From: Vitrella brassicaformis CCMP3155
Lineage: Eukaryota; Protista; Chromerida
Direction of reading: 5' to 3'
Assembly (NCBI GenBank): GCA_001179505.1
Contig: CDMY01000227.1
Span: 62,001-126,000 of the forward strand
Length of the DNA: 64,000 nucleotides
Part shown: positions 36,589 through 53,140 of the stretch, in pieces
How positions within the stretch are numbered: position 1 is the stretch's first letter
How the letters are laid out: every line of letters begins with the position of its first letter
The notes under the pieces: generated by a model
The model's database searches: none
What the model was told of the DNA's origin: nothing
Seen by the model: only the letters and a program-made list of their open reading frames with translations
Translations under genes and position numbers: made by a program

Positions 36589-39500
36589 CTAGTCTCCTCC
36601 TCCCGCCTCAGACTGTCCTCCCTTGACGATGTAGGTGACCGATATCTTGATGCACTCCCTGCAGGCAGTGCAGACCACACAGGGAGGGAGACAGAGACAC
36701 GCAGAGCACACGCATCGGCATCGCATCGCGCGTCTCTCATGCATCGATCGCATCGCAGCCATCCACCTACCTGAGCTCGTCATCGGTCGTGTCGTAGACC
36801 ATCAGGAAGTAGGAACGCTCAGACGGATCCGCAATCTGCATATGAGTGAGACACGCCAAGACACACACGCAAACAAAAAGACATACATGCGAATTAAGAA
36901 GCATATCGCCCCTCCCTCCCCTCGCTGTCTGACTGACCGGCGCGAACTTGAGTGGGAATTTGCCTTTCGAGTTGGCGGTGACCGTCACCTCCTTCTGCCT
37001 GTACGGACGCAGAAAGGCGTCCAGACAAAACACCCACATTGATGTCATGTCTCGGCTCATTGCTGCAGAGCTGCGCTGCGGCGTACCGTACCTGCATTGC
37101 ATGAGGTCGGGGTCAGAGCTCTTCAGGCGGAAGCTGACGTCATTCGACTCCTTGTTCTCATACGTGATCTTCTGCACACATAAGAGTGAGGCACTCACAC
37201 ACACGTACACACACATATCCTCTGTGCCCGTCTACTCCATGCACACCGACCTGGTTCTTGGCCACCCCGCATGCGAGAACGAGCTCGTACTCCCTCGTGG
37301 GCTCCGGTATGGCCTTGTCCTTCTCCTCTTTGGGCGGTGGCTCCTCCTCCTGCACTGGGGGGGCGGGCGGCTCCACCTCCTCGACCGCAGGGGGGGCAGG
37401 AGGCCCCGGGGGCTCCTCTGACACATAAATGAACACATCCACACATGAATGCGGCTGACCTGACAGAGAGACATGTACCCTTTTGCGCAGCTTCGACGTC
37501 ACTCGGCATCTCCTCGGCAATGGGGGGCGTCGCTGAGGTAACGAACGTACACACAGAGAGAAATGGATAGACGGAGACAGAACAATATTGCGTGCACGGC
37601 ACTGCGTGGAGTGAGTGGATGTGTAAGGAGGCGCTGCGCTCACCGGCCCCGGTGACGACGTCGAGCTTGGTGGCGGTCTCCTTTTTGGCACAAGGAAGCG
37701 GCCCGCCGAACGAAAACTGTTTGTCGCCACCAGCCGCACCCTCACCTATCGCCACCGGCACTCCTCCCTGCCCACCACCACGAGACGTCACACTCCCCTC
37801 AACTGACACACAATACATTACAGAACAAAACAGGACAGACAGACTCGTGTGTGTCTGACTTTAGTCGTTGTCTGTCTGTCTGGTGGCTGGCTGACTTCCG
37901 GGCGGGGGAGTGGGTGCCCCGCTCTCGTCCGCCTGCATGGATGCGGAAGGAGTCGAGGCTGCGTGGAAGGTGGCGGTGGCTGCCGTCTGGGCGTGGTAGG
38001 TGCTGGCGCTGCTGGGCCGCGTGGGGGTGGCGGTGGTGACCCCCGTGGCCGCCTGCCTGTCCTTGTCCTTGGCCATGGGCATCGTTGCCCGCATCGTCTC
38101 CATGTCGTGCAGCACCTCCGCTACCGAACACTCCTGGATGGCATTGCATTGCACAGACAGGTGCACTTGGGCTGGGGGGGGTGAGGGAAAGGAAGGGGAC
38201 TGTGTACCTGCAGCATGGCGAGGAGGTCTGCGAGTGTGGCGAGTCCGTCTCTGTCGGCGTCGACCAGCTCAAACAGCTCATTGAAGTCAAAAGACTCGTC
38301 AAACACAGGCCACGGATAGAGCTCTGCATTCACACGCACACACATATGTGGGTGTCAACACACCTCATGCCGACTGACGTGCTTTGCCGACCTTCTTTGA
38401 ATTCCTGAAGTGTGAGCCGTTCGGTGAGGCCCCGCCTGAGGTAGTCCCGCAGGAACTCAAGCAACGGCTGGTCGCCACGCGCACGCAACAAACGCGCCTG
38501 CAACTCCACTGCAGCCATCTTGCGATCTATGCGACACACCCGCAACACACATTTGCACCCCAACTTCTCTTCTCCCTCTGCTTGAGAGTGTGTGTGTCTG
38601 ACCTTCCCGGCCCACAGGAGGCGACAGCACCGGTGGTCCGCCCTCACTGGGGGCCACGGGGCTGGCGGGGTGGCTGGGCATGGGTGTGGGGAAGACGCTC
38701 ACGTCGGTCATGAACGACGCCCCCAGCCGCTGGGAGCCGCGCGTGCTGCCGGGCTGCAGGTACACCGTCGACCCCAGCGACTTGCGGGAGTCCAACAGAG
38801 GGTCTTGACCGGTGGCAGATCCTGTGCAGTGCAGTGCAAAGGGACATATTGTTCGTGTGGTGGGGTGGGGTGTGTGGCGTGGTCTGTTGTCCCTTTCTCT
38901 TGCTTGCCTGGCCTTTCCATCGGTGTGTCGATGCCTCCCACGTCGGCGATTGGCAGGCTGTCCAGAACACTCTGGCGGGGAGGCCTGGATGCAGGCACAG
39001 ACGGAGACACAACACGGGTATTGAAAGGAACGCATCTTATGCTGTGTCATCTTGCTCACTCCTGGAATGTGATTTTGCGCTTCAGCTGAGGGAGGGCAGT
39101 CTCGCTCGGGGTGACCTATGCACCACGCCACACATCAAACGGCCAGGACTTTCCCCCCACGCCGTCCGCTTGTGTATATCTCACTGCGATGGTGACGCGC
39201 CGCTGGTCGGCAGCGTAGTGCCTCATGAAGTCCCTGAGGAAGCAAGAAAGAGAGAAAGAAAGAAAGAAAGACGCATCCACACACAACACAGTGAGCGGGC
39301 GCATCGACCAGTCTGTCACATGTGGGATGGAGTGTGTCCTTACTGGTACTTGACGCCTCCCGCGGGGTCCTCAAACGCCTCACAGAGGGCCCGCAGCTGA
39401 CCGGTTGGGAGGGATATGTTCCCCGACGCCAGAGCCTGAACGGGGGGAGACACGAGAGATAGAGAAGGATACCATCTAAGCTTTCTTTCAATTACCTGTT

Positions 39501-40788
39501 GGAACTCAGCCCTCGAGACGGCGTGTGTGTTCCATCGGTCGAGGGCCTGGAAGGTCGACGTCAACACATCAGCCTTTTCACTCGCCAAAGCACGCAACTC
39601 CTGCAGGAGCACACACCCGATGTCACAACGAGCACACTGACTCTCTTCCCTTCCCAATTCTGGGCACCTCCTCCGTGATTGGCTGCGGCTCCTGCGCCGC
39701 CATGGCCGACAGCATACTCATCTGCCGCCTCGTGTCCCACAGATCCTCCTTACCCGCCACCACCACCTGCTGCTCCGTCGCCATGCTCGCCCGGCTCGGG
39801 GCCGCCGCAGACTTCGGCCTCGTCGATGCGACGGTTGTCACAGAGGGTGCGCGAGACGAAGGGGCAGCCTGCGAGGGGGCTTGCCTGACCGAAGGGGCCC
39901 TCTGTGGCTGAGGGGGTGCGTATGAAGGTGCGTGGGACGGTGCGCGGCTTGCGCGAGGGGAGGGGGTCTTCTGCTGTTGCTGCTGTCCCTTCACGGGGGG
40001 CTGTGGTGGCGGGACTGACTCGCCCTGAAGCACTTTTTGGACTTTCTGGGCGACCAGCCAGGCATTGGGCCACCGACCCACCGTCAACTTGGAGAACACC
40101 AGCTGCCAGACAAGAGGGCAAAAACGGAGCCGAGAGACGCGTGTGTGTCCGCTGACTGACTCTGAGTTACCTACCTGTCTTTTGGAGTGTCGAATGACGG
40201 AGACCTCGAAGGCTCCCAGTTGAGGGTACCTGAACCTTCGGACGGCGCCACCTGACCCCTTTACGACATCTGACAGAACAAACATGTCCTATCGGATGGA
40301 TGTCCCCTCTGCTCTCTTGTTTGTGGACGCGTGCATACAGGTGCGATGGTGGTGATGGTCCATGAGCCACACCTCGTCCCCGTGCCGACCTAGCCTCGGG
40401 GGAGGATTCACCTGCAGACAGACAGACAGACAGACAAACAGGCAGACCACAGGGATGGGACGAAACGAGCCCGGATGTCAGGTGCGAGTGAAGGATGTCT
40501 CACGTTGACCACGACGTCATCGCATGTTGTCTCTATCTCACTCTTGACTGAAACACGCAAGGAGAAGAACAGAGTAGGGGCTTCCATATGTTGTCTGCAT
40601 CTCTCTCCCCCCGCTCACCCCTGGATGCGTAGTCCTCGTATTTGGCCGCCACATGGCGAGTGCACCACGCGTGCTCCTCGCAGTCAACGCTGCAACCAAC
40701 ACAAAGGCACAATGACAAGGAACAGTGACATGAAGTCTCAGGGATCTTTTCCTTCCCACCAGTGCTCTATCTCGACAGAGTTCGACAT
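36589..40788 (-). CDS. Multi-exon protein with an N-terminal Rdx (SelT/SelW/SelH-like) CxxC domain, EF-hands, Pro-rich linkers and a C-terminal NPHP4-like Ig domain
   Basis: Spliced N-terminus MSNSVEIEHC|VDCEEHAWCTRHVAAKYEDYASR, then RYPQLGAFEVSV|LVFSKLTVGRWPN. EF-hand-like segments are FQALDRWNTHAVSRAEF and FELVDADRDGLATLADL. The C-terminus is YELVLACGVAKNQ|KITYENKESNDVSFRLKSSDPDLMQ..KFPLKFAP..YFLMVYDTTDDELR|ECIKISVTY. Confidence 0.75.
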
Positions 40789-40956: not shown

Positions 40957-43900
40957 ATGGCCTCGTTATCACCGTCGTTGCAGTCCTATGGGTATCAGTT
41001 GGGCAGCCGTGTGGGCGGCGGACAATTCGGGCAGGTCTACTTTGTCGCGAAGGCCTCTGACAAGGCTACCACACTCGTCGCCAAGGTCTGCCGACGGCAC
41101 GTGATTTCCTTCCTCTCTCATCCATGTGGTGTCGCGTCATGCAACGTCGTGCAGTTGATCCAGCCAGCTGATGACAAGACCAAAGAATCCGCACTACAGG
41201 AGGTATCTACCAGGGGGCAAAGAAAATCATGATGGAGCGTGTTTGACTGCATATTCGTTTATCTATTTACCCGCATCGCGTGCAGGCCCACCTACTCAAG
41301 ATGCTCAGCCATCCCCACATCGTGGCCTGTGTTGATGCCCTGCAGCTCGACACGGGCCACATCGCGATCGTTCTCGAGGTAAGGCAGCTGCTAACTACCT
41401 CCATGTCGTTGTGGCGATCTCCTGATTGGCACGTGCGTCAGTTCAGTACTGCGCCGGGGGCGACCTATCGGCAAAGGTCGAGACCTGCAAACAGAATCCC
41501 AATCAGGCCCGCTTTACGGAGGAGAGAATCATGTTGTGGTCAGTCCGGAGACAGAGAGGAAAGGCTCACTGGGATGGATCGACGCTGGTGTGTGTGCAGG
41601 TTTGTGCAGATGGCGGAGGGCATCCACTATCTGCACCAGCAGCGAATTTTGCACAGAGACATCAAGTCAAAAAATGTCTTCCTTGATGGGGCAGACAATC
41701 TGAAAATTGGTACGGACATGCGCCCGTGATTTTACTCTTGAGCAGTACGATTACGTGGTTTTTGTCTTGTGCAGGCGATTTGGGTCTGTCAAAGGTTTTC
41801 ACAGGGCAGCAGGAGGAGGCCAAGAGCTTTGTCGGCACCCCATTGTATCTCGCACCTGAGGTAGGGGAGAGAGACGGAGGCAGACAGGCACCTGCATGGA
41901 TGTATTCACCCGACCATCAGATATGCGAGAACAAGCCCTACACCTACAAGGCCGACATATGGGCGCTGGGCTGTATCGTCTATGAGCTGGTCGCGCTGCA
42001 GTCGGCCTTCCACGGCACCGGGTTGCTCCAGGTGGTGTGGAAGATCGTTACAAACCAGCCGCGGCCGCTGCCGCCCGATTGCCCAAGTGGCATCAGAGAC
42101 ATTATCATGTATGGGATGATGGAATAGCGAGGGAAGACGTGACGGTGTATGCGGCGTTGGCTTCTCAGGCGAACGCTGGAGAAGGACCCAGCGAAGCGCG
42201 TCAGCCTCGCTGCGTTGCTGCAAGGTACTTGGTTGGAAGGATCGGGATCTTTGTTTGTGCTCATTTGTGTCTGACTCCATTCAGATGAGTACGTCAAGGG
42301 CTACGTCCAAAAGAATGCATCAAGACACCAGCAGGCAGCGATCCCCTCCGGTCCCCCACGGCCAAGTGTCCCGACAAAAAGCACACGTACGCAGCGCACC
42401 ATCACCAACACTTTTCTCAATATTCGAGCCATCCATGTGTCTCCTTACCTCCCCATCCCACAGATCCACGTCACGCCCTGCAGCCGACGGTCTTCTCCTT
42501 CCCGTCCCCCTCAAAGCCGTCCCCCTCGCCCTCTCCCGTGCCGCCCACCGCCCCCGTTCCCCACAATCAGAAGACAGGCGGGTCACTCCGTGCTCAGGTG
42601 CGCAAATCTGTCAGACACACACATCAACACATGCACACAATCGAAAGGATACACAAAGACCTCGCCCCCTTCCCTCAGAGATACTCGGCGAGACCAAGGC
42701 TGTCAGTCGACAAGTCGCAGGCATCCTCAGGTGCGTCCACTGCCGCCCCGCCGAGGCTGGAGATATCGGCTGTCGGGAGGCGGTCGGGAGACACACTGGA
42801 GTACTCGGTGAGCACTGCGGGGGGCGGTGAGAGGAACAAGGACGTCGGAGGGGAATCTAGTCAAGACTTTGTGATGCTTTTTGCAAATCGGGGTAAGTCA
42901 GTCTGTGTGGGCATGTCTTCCTTCACCACCCCTGTGTCTGTGTCTCCTTCTCCATCTGCAGAGGCGAGTGAGCGTGCCATGGATAATTCGTCGGAGTTGC
43001 ATGTGCTGTCTGAAGCGTACGTGTACGGCGTCCTCCTGAAGATGCGCATAAAGCTCGAAAAGGCCGGCAGCACCGTCGAGAAGCTGTTCGCCAGATTCGA
43101 CACATCCAAGGACGGCATGCTGAACATGCAGGAATTCATTCAGGCCCTCTCTGCCTTTCCCCAGCTGGGCCTGTCCTCCTGGGAGGTCGTGGAGCTCTTC
43201 AAACACTTCGACTACGACAAGAACCAGCAAATATCTTTGGCCGAGTTCCGCAGCACACTGGAGAATGCCAACAAAAATGACGAATGGTCAGGTTTGAATT
43301 CGCCCATCAGATCTGGTTTCGGAACTGCCGTCCTCGTGGGCAGTCGTCATGTCCCGAAGGAGATGCTGACAAATGGGGACGAGGCTGATGTGATGCTGCC
43401 GCTGGGAATGGTGAAAGAGGCGGTGGAAAGGGCCGGCTACTCACTCAGAGAGGTCTTCGAAGAATATGACACATATGGACGAGGGGCGATTGCACAGGCA
43501 CGTGTATGGCGCGACTGCATGCCTAGGGTGCATTCTCTTCTTCTTGTTGTGTTCAGCACGACTTCCAGAGGTTGGTGGCCATGCTGGTCCCGAGCATGCG
43601 GCCGATCGACATCGACAGGCTGTTTGCCATGATGGACAAGGACAAGAGCGGAGACATCAACTTCAAGGAATTTTTAGCCAACTTCGAAGACCCCACCTCC
43701 CCATACCACAAGATGGTCCACTCCCCCTTCAGCCCAATGTCTCCGGACGCATCGCCTGGAGGCATGGGACAGCATCACGGTATCAGCAGCGAGTCGGGCA
43801 TGTCGTGGAGGAAGCGGGACCCGCTGCACCGGCTGCCTGGGCTGGTGATGAGTGAGAGGTACAGCAAGCACGTCCTGGCCCGGCTGCAGCGGCGGCTGGT

Positions 43901-44615
43901 CAAAAGAGGCCTTTCCGTGCGGGAGGCCTTTAACCTATATGACATGGACGGGTGGGGGCACACATGTGCACACGCGCGAGACACAAAAGGCAGCTGCGTC
44001 TCTGTGTCTGTGCGTCTGTCCGTATAGTGATGGTGCGCTGGACTTATCTGAGTTGAAGCTGGTGATTGCCTCCCTGAATCTGGGGGTTTCAGCGGCAGAG
44101 GTTGACCACCTCTTCGCTCGTCTGGACCAGGACGGTGACAAGGTTGTCACACTGAGTGAGTTCGAGAGGGCGCTGGCCTCCGCATCTGAAGACAAGAGTG
44201 TGCTGGCCACTCGTGCGTGGGCCAAGGGGGTGCTCGAGAAAATGGGCGAGGGGATCGCACGAGCAGGTAGGGACAGAGAAGGACAGACGTGTCCCCTTCG
44301 TCAAGCGATCTGATGGACATCCATACCAGCAGGCATGACACTAGAGGAGGCATTTCACAAGTTTGACCGCCACAACACTGGCAAGATCCCGCGGGCGTCG
44401 TTCCGGGCGGTGCTCCATCTGTTCGAGCCATCGCTCACCAACCGAGAGCTCGACTCTGTTTTCGAGGTGGCCGACAAGGTGACCGATGGACTCACTGACC
44501 GCAGCAAAGTGTCATGGGCGCTTTTGGTCGTGTGTCTCCCTCCTCCCTCCCCTCTCAGGATAGTTCTGGCGATGTGGATTGGCAGGAATTTCTGGAGGGC
44601 ACCACAACAAGCTAG
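40957..44615 (+). CDS. NIMA-related (NEK) Ser/Thr kinase with about 8 C-terminal EF-hand motifs
   Basis: Kinase motifs: [45 protein letters not shown]|[35 protein letters not shown]-loops: [52 protein letters not shown]|[34 protein letters not shown]|[13 protein letters not shown] at 44613-44615. Confidence 0.92.
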
Positions 44616-45255
44616 CTAGGCCGGGATTGGAACATTTGAGTGTGTGGGACGGCCGCTTGGTCAGAACTTGTGCATGTGAGTGCGCCTGCTACATTCAAGA
44701 CTTTTTCACACACATCACATTCACGTACCAAAGGCAAGTGTCGATCACATGTGCAGCCGGTCAGCCAGTCTCTCTTCGTCACCCAATGTATGGTCACAGC
44801 ATCAACCAACCAAAAATCACCAAAGACAGCCAGTGTATGGTGTGTGCTGTACATTCGGCCGTGTCAGACAGGGACAGGCAGACGGACAGACAGACACATA
44901 GACGTACCAGGGTGTGGTGTGGGGGCTCAGGTGAGGTGCGTGTCAATGACAGACAGACAGACAGACAGACAGACAACCAGACAACCCAACACACACCATC
45001 CCTCGTAGGGAACAAAAGACCTCACGCTCAGATACATCCACACGGCATACTTACGTGCATACATCGTGGATCCATCCATCTACTCATCCTGTCTGTCTTT
45101 CATTCCCGTCCCTCACCTCCTCCCACCCACCGGGTCGCATACACATGAAGGAAGGAATGACTGAATCGCCATAAAGCACGTTAGTTAGTCAATAGTTGGG
45201 CATTTGGGATTGGGGGACACATTACTTCTCTTACGTCAGGGCCGTCGGTTCTTAC

Positions 45256-48501: not shown

Positions 48502-51500
48502 TCACGCAGCCTTACACACATCTGCATGTCGTGTCCGTGCACTATCACCACCACCAGACAGCAGTCTGTGAGCAGCAATGGCCAGGAGTGGGGCCAGGCC
48601 GTGCAGCAGCAGCATCGCCATGCCGTCATACAGATACTTGGGCGCAAACACAGACCACACCTGCACGCAACACACACACACACACACACAGACAGGGAGA
48701 GCGAGAGAGAGAGAGAGAGAGATCGCCACGTGCAAATCTGTCTACTTGGATGCGTGTGTGCCCTGGCTGACCATGAGGTGTCTTCTCAGTATGATGAGGG
48801 CCACCTCCGAGGCCACATACCGCAGCGACGCCGCCACCAACACGCTGAACGCACAACACACCACACACACACACACACTCCCTCAGTCTCCCTCAGTCTC
48901 CCTCACTCTCCTCTCACATCCGCAATGCTTACCTCGCCATCACTCTCACAAGGCGCACCAAGAGCACAGGCGGGGCGGCATTCCTGTCACCGCTGCCTCC
49001 CTTAGCCGTGGTTGTCACCACCACGGCCGCCGGCAGTGCGCAGAATGCCAGGATGAATGAGCAGTACGTGTGGAGGAAGACGAGCATGGGCGAGAGGTTG
49101 ATGTCGAACTTGAGCAGACCCACAAAGGCGGCCGAGACCGGCACCGCGTTGAACGTCATCCGGTGGCCCGTCGTGAAGAACATCGCGAAACCAACCAGCA
49201 CCACCATCGCACCCACGGACAACTCGGATAGCCCACCAAGCACCACTGTTGAAGACGCCCTGCGCTCCTTCTCTCTCTGTCCGCGGGAAGAGTGCACAGC
49301 CGTCAGCAGCAGTGGCAGCTGGATGAGGCATGACGCAGCCGGGGTCACCTGGGAGGCGCCGAGGAGCGTCATGGAAGGGAATACCTGGCTGCCCACCACC
49401 ACTAAGGCAAGTGCGTGCAGCTGGGACTCAAGGCTGCCGCTGTTGGTGGTCTGGATAAGGCGACCAGGGAAGGAGAGGCAGGCGAGCAGCTGAATGCCGC
49501 AAAGGGCATAGACGATGCGGGGCAGCACCACCACGAGAGCGTCGTGGATGGGGAGAGCCCATAGGGTGGCGCCCAGCCGCTGCTCACGAGCCTCGGATGT
49601 CTCGGTCGTGCGCTGGTAGAACTGACAGACAGACAGACAGAGTGACTCCCTGACTGACAAGCATCGATCGGTCTCACCCACTCTACTTACCTCCACATGC
49701 ATCTGCATGGCAGTTGCAGCGAACTGCAGGCCCCACGCCACTGCAATACACCGCCGCACCCAGCCCCTACGCACACATGAGTGCCAGAGCAGCGCCAGCA
49801 TCACTGCAAGAGGGACGAGCATGACGGCCGATGCTGCCGTGGGGTGGTCGATGACGACAGAGGGCTGCGGCCGGTCGCCCGGCATGGCCTCCAGCTGGTC
49901 GATCGACGGGCCCAGCCGAACCGCACACAGAACACCCACCATTCTGCCTACAACAAGGTGATGACAGCAGGGGCAATCGAGACACGATCGATGCATCGCT
50001 TGGCTTGCTGCCTCTTGTTTGGTACCCGAGTATGAGCCTCCGTGGCCGTGTGTGTTCTCCTGCTGCAGATGGTCTCCCGAGGGCCCTTCTCGCCACATGG
50101 CGGAGCACGGCGGCAGTGAGGTGCAGCAGCAGCAGCGACGAGAGCAGGAACCGCACACACGTGGCCTCCAGCATGGAGTAGCAGTCAGAGAACAGACACG
50201 CGCACAGACACACCACCACCAGCAGCTCGCCACCGCCAGTCACCTCCACACGGACGGGGAGCAATGACAGCACCCTCCCACCCTTCACAAAGGCGGACCA
50301 CATGTAGCTGCCGACCAGACCGGCGCCGAGGCAGCCACCCGTGCAGGTCGGTAACCCGATCAGGCGCAACGTCGCAGCAAGAGGCGCTGTGAGCACCAGA
50401 CCGAGGCAGGCGCGCCAGAGGACGGTCAGAGGTGAGGGCAGAGCCCCAGGCCACTCGGCGGGTGCAGTGGTCTCCATGCGGGCGAGGGATAGAGTGAACA
50501 TGACCTGCGCTGCGACTGCCATCAGGGACGTGGCGACACCGATCGTCAAGGCGACTGGGTCAAAGGTCGTCCACTGCGCTCGGGCAGCATCGAGCACCGC
50601 CGCCAGATACCCACGACATGCCGCAATGAACGCCCTCAGATCATCCGCCACGCCGCCATCGCTCTGCTCCCACTCGGCCCTTCTCAATCGACCGGCGTGG
50701 GAGTCAACTCTCTCCCAGAGTGCCGCCAGATGCTCGCCGTCGGCGAAGGACTTGCCGGAGGCCTCGTCGTATCTGCCGAGGTACCGCCTCACTTGCGCAG
50801 CATTGAGATAGAACGCCTCGGCGTGATAACGGAGCTCGCCCACAACACCAGCAGCACCAGCAGGGGCACCGTGGATGTGGCTGACGGACGGCAGCATGTC
50901 CGGCGTGATGCAGCCGAGGTTGCCAAAAGGGATGGGGACACCGAGCAGCAGGGCGAGAGTGGGCACGAAGTCCACCTGGGGGATGGCGTCGTGGTGGGTG
51001 CGTGTGGAGGGGTACGACGGGTGCATCGAGGTCTCTGAGAAGGGCCTCCTCGAGTAAACGAACAAGGCCGAGTCCACCTACACGCACCAACCAAGACATA
51101 CATATACGGTAGGGGCGATTGCATCGCTATATCCATCCCGTCTGTGTGTGTGTGTGTGTGTGGTGTGACCTCTTCCGGCAGGGCGCCTCCGTGAGCGCCA
51201 TCGTCGGTCTGTCCGTGGTCGCCGAGAAGCACCACCAGTGTGTCGTCATCTACTCGATCGACAGTGTCCGCGAGCACCCTGTCCATCTGAGTGAGCTTCT
51301 CGCGCATGGCCGGGTGGTTGACCTCATACTTGTGGCCCACATGATCCACACCCAGGAAATGGCCAACCAACACAGACCAGTCAGACCTTCAACCACACAG
51401 ACGGACAGACAGGCAGGCAGACAGGCACATCCATGCTTTAGCCGAGCAGCCTGCATTTATCAGCCCTTGTGACTTACTTGTTCATTTCGGCCCATATGTG

Positions 51501-52166
51501 TGCCATGACGCCGTCATCCACAGTGTGCAGGTCCTTGACGTCAAACGAGGGGTACGGAAACGCCCTCGACAGACCATTCTCAACCACTGGGAAGAGGTCC
51601 ACCCAGGTCTCGTCCCCCATGGCCACCACGCCCCTCCCCTGCCGCCGCACCTGCTCAACCAGGTTGTCCTCACTCAGTGCCGACGACTCAAAGGTGTCAC
51701 GCACTTCGAAAAAGGTCGGCAGTGAGCCCGTGGTGAGGGCCTTGAGCCGCTGAGTGGTTGCCGTCGGCGCGTCAGCAACGAAGCGATACAGACGAGAGTT
51801 GTGCGGCTGCTCCGTCATGAGCCGATGGATGGTCGGGAGGCCGTTGATGTGATAGGGGCCAGCATCTGTGACAGGCAGGTCGGGCTGATAGAGTGCAAAG
51901 TCCCACCGCAGTCCGTCCACAATGAGAATGACCACTCGCCGATACTGAGCTGGCAGCCACGATGCTGCACCTGTAGCATCAGATGGATGATGCTGATGCA
52001 GGTCGGGGAAGAGCGGCTCTGCTGGTGGCGTGTCTGCAGCGCTGCGGTCCTTGATCTCGTATCGCGTGAGGAAGAAGCCTTGCAAAAAGAAGAGGATGCC
52101 GACAGACAGCAGCCCTATCTGCCACACCAGATGAAATGCAAGGCTCCATCCGATATGAGCAGCCAT
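48502..52166 (-). CDS. PIGO: GPI ethanolamine phosphate transferase 3 (PIG-O/Gpi13)
   Basis: [127 protein letters not shown] and [11 protein letters not shown]. Confidence 0.95.
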
Positions 52167-52386
52167 GACCGCATCGCATCTGGAGATCCACTCCTTCACG
52201 GACTCTTCTTTTCCATCATTTCTCTCAAAAGCGGTTTTGCACACGTCTGCGAGCTTAGCTGTGCGAGCTCGGATTTCCCTGCCTGTTTTCGTAGCTTTTT
52301 CGTGCGTTCGTCGGCTCTCACACGCTCCTCCCAGTTGTCTTCGCCCTTTCCACTCCTCCATCTCCTTTCCCAACTTGAAAGACGGC

Positions 52387-53140
52387 ATGTCGTCCATTCC
52401 CGTGCTCGGCGCTGCAGGCGGCAAGGGAGGCAAAGGTACGCAGCACACACTGACAGCAGCCGGGCAGACACAGCGGCAAGCACAGAATCCCGGATCTTTG
52501 TGCCTGTGTCTTGTGCTGCAGTCGGCGGCAAGGGCGGCAAAGTTGGCGGCAAGGTCGGGGGGAAGGGCGCTAAAATCGGATCAGGTGACTCACCCACATC
52601 ACCACACACCAGCGGCAGGCACGTCGTTTCTGTCTGTCTGTGTGGATTGTGGCCTGCAGGCAAGTCCAAGAAGCAGCCTCTGTCTCGGTCAGCACGCGCC
52701 GGTCTGCAGTTCCCAGTGGGCCGTATCCACCGGCTGCTCAAGTCACGCGTGAGCTCATCCAGCCGTGTGGGCGCCACCGCCGCCGTCTACTCGGCCGCCA
52801 TTCTCGAGTACCTTACCGCTGAGGTGCTCGAACTCGCCGGCAATGCGTCCAAAGATCTCAAAGTCAGTGACACAGCACCCGCAACACCACGCGCAGCACA
52901 CCGTTGCCCTGATTGGTATCCTGTGTTGTGTGTGGGATGTGTGTGTAGGTGAAGCGTATCTCTCCGCGGCATCTGCAGCTGGCGATCAGGGGTGACGAGG
53001 AGCTGGACACTTTGATCAAGGCGACCATTGCGGGTGGCGGTGTGATTCCGCACATCCACAAGTCGCTCATGAAGAAGTCGGGCGGCGGGGCCGGCGGCCA
53101 AAAGGGCAAGGGCGGACAGAAGGGACAGCCGCAGGAATGA
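52387..53140 (+). CDS. H2AZ: Histone variant H2A.Z, 4 exons
   Basis: GGKVGGK-repeat N-tail, [52 protein letters not shown]|[40 protein letters not shown]. Introns start at about 52436, 52585 and 52863. Confidence 0.97.

Follow-up and report, generated by a model that had tools for sequence, protein, structure and literature searches.

NIMA-related kinases (NEKs) control cilium length, basal bodies and mitosis, and their known tails consist of coiled coils, RCC1 repeats, armadillo repeats, PH domains and the like. Flagellar beating and shedding are under the control of Ca2+, and alveolates are believed to couple Ca2+ to phosphorylation through calcium-dependent protein kinases (CDPKs), in which a junction helix located right after the kinase is packed on a compact four-EF-hand domain. 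The present analysis concerns a gene of the chromerid Vitrella brassicaformis CCMP3155 (GCA_001179505.1, contig CDMY01000227.1, positions 62,001 to 126,000 of the forward strand; this whole stretch of 64,000 nucleotides is hereafter called the window, and coordinates are given within it). The gene, at positions 40957-44615 of the plus strand, is predicted to encode a protein of 876 residues, in which a NEK-type kinase is followed by a tail of eight EF-hand motifs. In the published NEK phylogeny (PMC2031824), NEK tails carry protein-interaction domains only, with EF-hands and calcium unmentioned, and in the Phytophthora kinome (PMC3019232) EF-hands are restricted to CAMK-type kinases and a single PH-domain kinase. 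Full-text literature searches returned no description of a NEK with EF-hands, and a NEK whose tail is an array of EF-hands appears to be an undescribed layout, seen in one species so far.

Comparison with described kinases

The Vitrella protein shares with NEK1/NEK2-type NEKs the N-terminal catalytic domain, the motifs HRDIKSxN, GTPxYLxPE and ICENKPYxxKxDIWALGC being common to both, and, like NEKs generally, it has a lineage-specific C-terminal tail (PMC2031824). It differs from the known NEKs in having eight EF-hands as this tail, DLG in place of DFG and a long branch. With the CDPKs of plants, ciliates and apicomplexans it shares the domain order, with EF-hands behind the kinase on the same polypeptide, and Ca2+ could thereby be read in cis. 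However, the CDPK kinase belongs to the CAMK group and not to the NEKs; the short autoinhibitory junction helix of CDPKs is replaced by a predicted Ser/Pro-rich linker of about 165 residues; and the tail holds eight EF-hands, in four units separated by spacers and nearest to multi-EF-hand proteins, where CDPKs have a calmodulin-like domain of four. The predicted protein lacks two CDPK-defining features, the kinase group and the junction with its calmodulin-like domain, and is CDPK-like at most loosely, as a Ca2+ reader in cis. Of the "CDPK-like architecture" proposed in the first-pass annotation of the window, the domain order was retained, whereas the junction (a linker is found instead) and the EF modules (kin to giant multi-EF-hand proteins and not calmodulin-like) were not.

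A precedent for EF-hands joined to a non-CDPK kinase in a protist is PITG_08008 of Phytophthora infestans, which combines EF-hands, a PH domain and such a kinase and was confirmed by reverse transcription PCR (PMC3019232). It differs from the Vitrella protein in having N-terminal EF-hands, which fit the consensus poorly and failed to bind 45Ca (PMC3019232), and in having a kinase that is not a NEK. A second comparison is offered by Vitrella itself: the protein P0151 (L005, G000:C518:52538-55630; 733 residues) combines a NEK-like Pkinase domain (residues 7-242) with a complete IFT57 intraflagellar-transport domain (PF10498, residues 295-693), and shows that Vitrella NEK-like kinases acquire cilium-related C-terminal domains. 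The NEK-like and IFT57 layout also occurs in P0152 (Logan) and P0153 (ENA), from two other organisms, whereas the EF-hand fusion was found, among the sequences searched, only in the Vitrella locus described here.

NEK identity of the kinase domain

Database searches were run exon by exon, and the joined kinase domain was compared in a local script. Residues 1-267 constitute a protein kinase, the domain itself spanning about residues 12-267 of 876 at the N-terminus, and the Pfam Pkinase profile is matched by exons 5, 6 and 7 (E 9e-11, 5e-4 and 1e-6, respectively). All catalytic residues are kept, namely GGGQFG, the VAK lysine, the alpha-C Glu, HRD, the catalytic-loop Asn, D(L)G, where DLG replaces DFG, and APE. 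The catalytic loop reads HRDIKSKN and the C-lobe contains ICENKPY. In the activation loop, AKSFVGTP aligns with ARACIGTP of the NEK1 chain, and the Ser present there may represent a regulatory phosphosite.

Among solved structures (PDB), the nearest to exon 7 alone is NEK1 (47 bits), with NEK7 and NEK2 next. With exons 6-7, NEK1 (57 bits), NEK7 (49 bits) and NEK2 (41 bits) account for the top 14 distinct sequences; the best non-NEK is SLK, a STE20-type kinase (38 bits), PknA also ranks behind the NEKs, and no CDPK or CaMK structure was matched at E<1e-6. The N-lobe exons were too short to be classified against PDB, and a search of the ESM Atlas with exon 7 returned "protein kinase" only. In the local script, the whole domain (residues 13-267) showed 36-45% identity and about 190-200 bits to metagenome NEK-like open reading frames (ORFs), versus 94 bits to a Vitrella CDPK-like kinase. 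One of these metagenome ORFs (L055), 40% identical to the domain, scored 295 bits with NEK1, 201 with NEK2 and 168 with NEK7 when searched against PDB, versus 129 bits for its best non-NEK and 118 bits for a CDPK. In a quick maximum likelihood tree, whose rows were selected by likeness to exon 7, a split supported at 98% in the SH-like approximate likelihood ratio test (SH-aLRT) places the domain, which lies on a long branch, with the NEKs and apart from the Vitrella CDPK-like kinase and three other kinases.

On the basis of these comparisons, the predicted kinase is a member of the NEK family, nearest to the NEK1 type, and every NEK feature tested is found in the deduced protein: the similarity itself, an N-terminal kinase with a variable tail, and the catalytic residues together with the activation-loop Ser. 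The first-pass annotation had proposed an intact NEK-type catalytic domain, which is borne out by the complete set of catalytic residues and by NEK1, NEK7 and NEK2 leading the solved relatives. It had also set beforehand, as a check, whether the kinase would instead group with the CDPK/CAMK kinases, and both the tree split and the bit scores place it outside them.

The EF-hand tail

Residues 432-876 are organized as four mutually alignable units of about 88 residues, each composed of a lead helix and an EF-hand pair. The helix before each pair is amphipathic and basic and ends in a Gly-x-Ser/Thr turn, which is followed by the odd-numbered and then by the even-numbered EF-hand. The four large 3' exons match the Pfam families EF-hand_6, EF-hand_7 and EF-hand_1 above the cut-offs, with E values from 2e-15 down to 2e-6. 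The loops were also compared with PROSITE PS00018, a 12-residue loop with ligands at positions 1, 3, 5 and 12, and six of the eight match it: EF1 (43099-43134) and EF2 (43210-43245) in exon 12, EF4 (43635-43670) in exon 13 and EF6 (44125-44160) in exon 14, each within a single exon, and EF5 and EF8 after splicing. The EF5 loop (43941-43951 and 44028-44052) is split by intron 13, with its first 11 bases in exon 13, and the EF8 loop (44473-44478 and 44559-44588) is split by intron 15. All Ca2+ ligands are thus kept in the second EF-hand of every pair and, in pairs 1 and 3, in the first one as well. In pairs 2 and 4 the first EF-hand, EF3 (43468-43503, exon 12) and EF7 (44365-44400, exon 15), respectively, is degenerate and no longer has the ligands of positions 3, 5 and 12. 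The count of about eight EF-hands, most of them canonical, given by the first-pass annotation agrees with these eight motifs in four pairs. Judging from its loops, the tail probably binds up to six Ca2+ and would change shape on binding.

A single-sequence AlphaFold model of exon 12 folded residues 16-104 of this exon as a long helix followed by an EF pair, with a predicted local distance difference test (pLDDT) of 73-86, the rest being disordered. The fold search of EF unit 1 gave no match at E<=0.001; its top rows (E 0.03-0.1), which can be taken as a lead only, were EF-hand proteins of ciliary doublet microtubules and EFCAB6. By sequence, EF unit 1 is a generic EF-hand, with hippocalcin, RIB57, RSP7 and calmodulin all scoring below 40 bits.

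Relatives of the EF-hand units

An exhaustive HMMER search with exon 12 against 1.84 billion representatives yielded 1,722 proteins at E<=0.001, of which the top 150 are large multi-EF-hand proteins with 3-19 matched stretches and about 30% identity. Nine of these 150, scanned with Pfam, contain EF-hands and, apart from these, just IQ, ankyrin or similar domains. A kinase is lacking in all 150 of these EF-hand relatives, as assessed both by BLAST with the NEK exons and by a kinase hidden Markov model (HMM), which in a control run recovered all Vitrella kinases. Giant multi-EF-hand proteins of alveolates and other protists, including Vitrella CEL93043.1 and proteins of Picozoa and metagenomes (800-5300 residues), have the same unit of a lead helix and an EF pair and are the best matches for exons 12, 14 and 15. 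They differ from the Vitrella NEK in possessing 12-36 EF-hands and other domains (RPGRIP1-type C2, IQ, ankyrin), in addition to the absence of a kinase among the best 150.

Exon by exon, the closest relative is CEL93043.1 (P0012) of Vitrella, a protein of 2836 residues with 42% identity over 81 residues. It has an RPGRIP1-type C2 domain (PF11618) scoring 29.9 bits against a cut-off of 29.2, which suggests a link of its EF-hand family to the ciliary transition zone. No close paralogue of exon 12 was found at E<=1e-6 in the Vitrella genome (a 72.7-Mb assembly of 1064 contigs), in which EF-hands are joined to many other things. As far as these similarities indicate, the EF tail probably derives from the giant multi-EF-hand protein family and was taken up within the chromerid lineage.

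Gene model and the predicted join between kinase and EF-hands

In the gene model, 15 GT-AG introns of 53-83 nt divide the region 40957-44615 into 16 exons, and the spliced frame has 876 codons with one stop only, the terminal one. The start is the first ATG (40957) after an in-frame stop and the end is the TAG at 44613-44615, so that this independently built model begins and ends at the limits given by the first-pass annotation. Domain continuity backs 11 of the introns. In particular, intron 6 is confirmed by the NEK1 alignment of read-through exons 6-7, which jumps its 20 codons, and removal of introns 13 and 15 restores canonical EF5 and EF8 loops.

Between the two domains, residues 268-430 constitute a Ser/Pro-rich linker of about 165 residues (28 S and 20 P of 187 residues counted), which is probably disordered. 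The step placing the kinase and the EF-hands in one frame is the splicing of intron 9 (42387-42463). The linker introns match the other introns in size and borders, and the codon-usage scores of the linker exons favor the spliced frame: +4.7 bits versus -16 and -3 in the other frames for exon 9, +8.2 versus -21 and -7 for exon 10, and +10.6 versus -33 and -23 for exon 11. Their sum, 23.5 bits, was reached by only 2 of 732 windows taken as controls from presumed non-coding DNA, whereas the unspliced read-through scored -36 bits and meets a stop at about 42806. About 1,080 confident codons, not including the linker exons, served to train the codon table. The join itself is predicted, and the kinase and the EF-hands probably belong to a single gene.

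Distribution and alternative explanations

Several results nevertheless weigh against a single NEK gene with an EF-hand tail. Linker introns 8-11 have no homology support and rest on splice signals and codon usage, and the codons used for training come mostly from the same gene. No annotated protein of the locus was recovered: exon 12 found no identical protein in a HMMER library that includes other Vitrella proteins, and exons 7-8, aligned on the paralogue frame, recovered the paralogue P0151 and not the protein of this gene. Exon 5 alone matches generic kinases in PDB (GCN2, MAP3K, MARK, CHK1) and gives neither a NEK-specific nor a CDPK match. Finally, when JGI metagenome contigs were scanned with exon 7, 80 NEK-like loci were obtained, none of which has an EF-hand (PS00018 on both strands and an EF-hand HMM that, as a control, recovers the window's own exons); the open frame after the match extends for at least 300 residues in 40 of these loci and for at least 500 residues in 20. 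Many of the 80 loci require the ciliate code, with TAA/TAG read as Gln; the nearest relatives among them (L008-L027) show long frames only under this code and are probably ciliate NEKs. EF-hands are equally lacking in the 6-9 kb downstream of five other Vitrella NEK-like loci. With the fusion seen in 0 of 80 metagenome NEK loci, 0 of 150 EF-hand relatives and 0 of 5 Vitrella loci, conservation cannot vouch for it. The pattern found here, which is lacking in the 80 NEK-like loci and in the five of Vitrella, is far beyond chance.

Given these gaps, two adjoining plus-strand genes might have been read as one, a short NEK ending in the linker and a separate EF-hand protein, in which case the finding would shrink to an ordinary NEK beside an ordinary EF-hand protein. 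For example, read-through from exon 9 to the stop near 42806 would give a kinase of about 441 residues, and the EF-hand protein could start at any of the in-frame ATGs at 42631, 42873 or 42979, just 5' of the first EF unit. Such a division would fit the lack of homology support for introns 8-11 and of an identical fused protein in the libraries searched, and, as the lengths of introns 10 and 11 are divisible by three and neither intron contains a stop, the frame from 42464 is uninformative on their splicing. It is, however, improbable in view of the negative score of the read-through against the positive one of the spliced linker exons and of the resemblance of the linker introns to the 11 domain-supported ones in size and borders. 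Two genes would also leave most of exon 11 without translation, although this exon has a coding score in a single frame, and the 3' end of one gene and the promoter of the other would have to fit into about 700 bases. In a database of 5.8 billion proteins, a search with the open frame of 364 residues that covers exons 10-12 found no protein of 200-637 residues matching exons 11-12, which argues against an annotated EF-only gene. The missing identical protein would likewise fit an unexpressed or decaying gene, or an assembly chimera of two loci, but this is very improbable for 876 codons in 16 exons with zero frameshifts or premature stops, in a sequence without N runs or a composition break; with the open frame, all catalytic residues and six EF loops intact, a pseudogene was rejected. 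The absence of an identical exon 12 protein may mean that the public annotation lacks a model of this gene, or that the gene is weakly expressed.

A different question is whether the protein is an ordinary, though long, CDPK with a CAMK-group kinase. Downstream EF-hands are a CDPK hallmark, and exon 5 alone matches the CAMK-group kinases MARK and CHK1 about as well as other families. Against this, NEK1, NEK7 and NEK2 lead the solved relatives with no CDPK at E<1e-6, the domain scores half as many bits or fewer with the Vitrella CDPK-like kinase as with NEK-like ORFs, its HRDIKSKN and ICENKPY contrast with the catalytic loop HRDLKPENFLF of the Vitrella CDPK-like loci, which have EF-hands downstream, and the tree split separates the two. 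As solved relatives, bit scores, motifs and tree are all on the NEK side, CDPK identity of the kinase was rejected and hardly deserves further weight. A NEK could still work as a true analogue of CDPKs, with a tail that folds back, inhibits the kinase without Ca2+ and releases it on Ca2+ binding; this is the directly Ca2+-gated NEK proposed in the first-pass annotation. The CDPK domain order, six loops that look competent for Ca2+, the amphipathic, basic helix before each EF pair and the autoinhibition of other NEKs, such as NEK9, by their own tails all speak for such direct gating. It nevertheless seems unlikely, since no junction or pseudosubstrate helix is seen in the sequence after the kinase, which is followed instead by the long Ser/Pro-rich linker, since the eight EF-hands form four separable units and not a compact four-EF calmodulin-like domain, and since the EF-hand relatives are stand-alone multi-EF-hand proteins.

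Possible function

The long tether and the lack of a CDPK-type autoinhibitory junction after the kinase favor docking over direct gating in cis. The EF tail, on its long flexible tether, would act as a Ca2+-dependent docking or targeting module: a rise in Ca2+ would cause the tail to bring the NEK to its partners or substrates, or to free the NEK from them, and the site of docking may be flagellar or basal-body microtubule structures. That the predicted Ca2+-binding tail acts by docking or targeting, and not as a pseudosubstrate clamp on the active site, is a tentative proposal. The overall explanation, a single gene for an 876-residue NEK and EF-hand protein whose tail serves as a Ca2+-dependent docking or targeting module, is favored with modest confidence. 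A flagellar or basal-body setting, and with it the flagellar or zoospore role proposed in the first-pass annotation, is only weakly suggested by the roles of NEKs, the RPGRIP1-type C2 domain of CEL93043.1 and the weak fold matches to EF-hand proteins of ciliary doublets and EFCAB6.

It is conceivable, although rather doubtful, that the gene represents an independent invention, outside CAMK, of a kinase reading Ca2+ in cis, in which the activity or place of a NEK is switched by four EF pairs derived from cilium-associated multi-EF-hand proteins. If true, zoospores would have flagellar or cell-cycle events that are under NEK control and coupled directly to Ca2+ transients. A NEK that carries a Ca2+-binding tail of its own would constitute a second, independent wiring of Ca2+ to a kinase and a natural experiment in the recruitment of EF-hands to enzymes. 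The host is a free-living, zoospore-forming relative of apicomplexan parasites, and the idea is open to experiment. The NEK-like and IFT57 protein encoded elsewhere in the genome adds to the signs that NEK tails are freely shuffled.

Exon structure

The kinase domain is distributed over eight exons, all on the plus strand, as are the others. Exon 1 (40957..41085; residues 1-43) contains the start codon, the Gly-rich loop GGGQFG and the VAK lysine, has the donor AAG/GTCTGC and lies within the local alignment of the whole kinase domain to NEK-like ORFs. Exon 2 (41155..41202; residues 44-59) leads from beta3 to helix alpha-C with the conserved Glu; its AG/GT borders keep the frame, and its length appears to agree with the lysine-to-Glu spacing of kinases. 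Exon 3 (41286..41378; residues 60-90), from alpha-C to beta5, has checked splice borders and a weak Pkinase match (profile positions 50-78). Exon 4 (41447..41538; residues 91-120), with frame and borders checked, covers the hinge and helix alpha-D with YCAGGDL, ends with two bases of a split codon and is alone too short for a family match. The catalytic loop is located in exon 5 (41600..41709; residues 121-157; Pkinase E 9.3e-11, profile positions 105-139), and the DLG motif and activation loop in exon 6 (41775..41860; residues 158-186; Pkinase positions 141-167), which aligns to NEK1 residues 168-196. Exon 7 (41921..42108; residues 187-248) encodes the C-lobe, with NEK1 as best solved relative, and exon 8 (42169..42224; residues 249-267) the end of the kinase domain, the alignments to NEK-like ORFs reaching residue 267.

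Exon 9 (42285..42386; residues 268-301), based on codon usage without homology support, contains the post-kinase segment and the start of the linker, which continues in the Pro/Ser-rich exon 10 (42464..42597; residues 302-346), preceded by an intron with the borders GTACGC...CCACAG, and in exon 11 (42679..42892; residues 347-417), with the donor GTAAGT. Exon 12 (42962..43503; residues 418-598) harbors EF unit 1, a spacer and the start of unit 2 (EF-hand_6/7/1, E 2e-15 to 6e-14). Exon 13 (43557..43951; residues 599-729) completes unit 2 and continues through a Ser/Pro spacer and the lead helix of unit 3 into the EF5 loop (EF-hand_1, E 6.6e-6), while exon 14 (44028..44266; residues 730-809) contains the rest of this loop, the EF6 loop and the lead helix of unit 4 (EF-hand_7, E 3.6e-8). 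Exon 15 (44333..44478; residues 810-858) contains the degenerate EF7 loop and the start of the EF8 loop (EF-hand_6, E 2e-6), and exon 16 (44559..44615) the remainder of the EF8 loop and the C-terminus up to the TAG. At its acceptor (44327-44332), intron 14 reads CAGCAG, a NAGNAG site, and two isoforms one residue apart are possible.

Neighbouring genes

The gene is flanked on both sides by minus-strand genes. Upstream, minus-strand open frames extend to about 40285, and the gene they define (37161-40285), with six long open frames, gave no Pfam match at E<=0.01; a "NPHP4-like" label for it was without Pfam support and is not used here. The downstream gene P0160 (44954-46344, minus strand) encodes 239 residues that belong to no Pfam family and are membrane-protein-like. 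It is expressed, being matched in two blocks by a Logan RNA contig (run ERR558152) from which an intron of about 96 nt has been removed, and this contig comes within 340 nt of the stop codon of the NEK and EF-hand gene. Between these two convergent genes, at about 44900-45010, there is a (GACA)n-like microsatellite, with the translation DRQTDRQTD. Further downstream, long open frames on the minus strand (48929-52448) show, by eye, motifs of the glycosylphosphatidylinositol (GPI) ethanolamine-phosphate transferase type, and a histone H2A-like exon was likewise recognized by eye on the plus strand at about 52700-52950.

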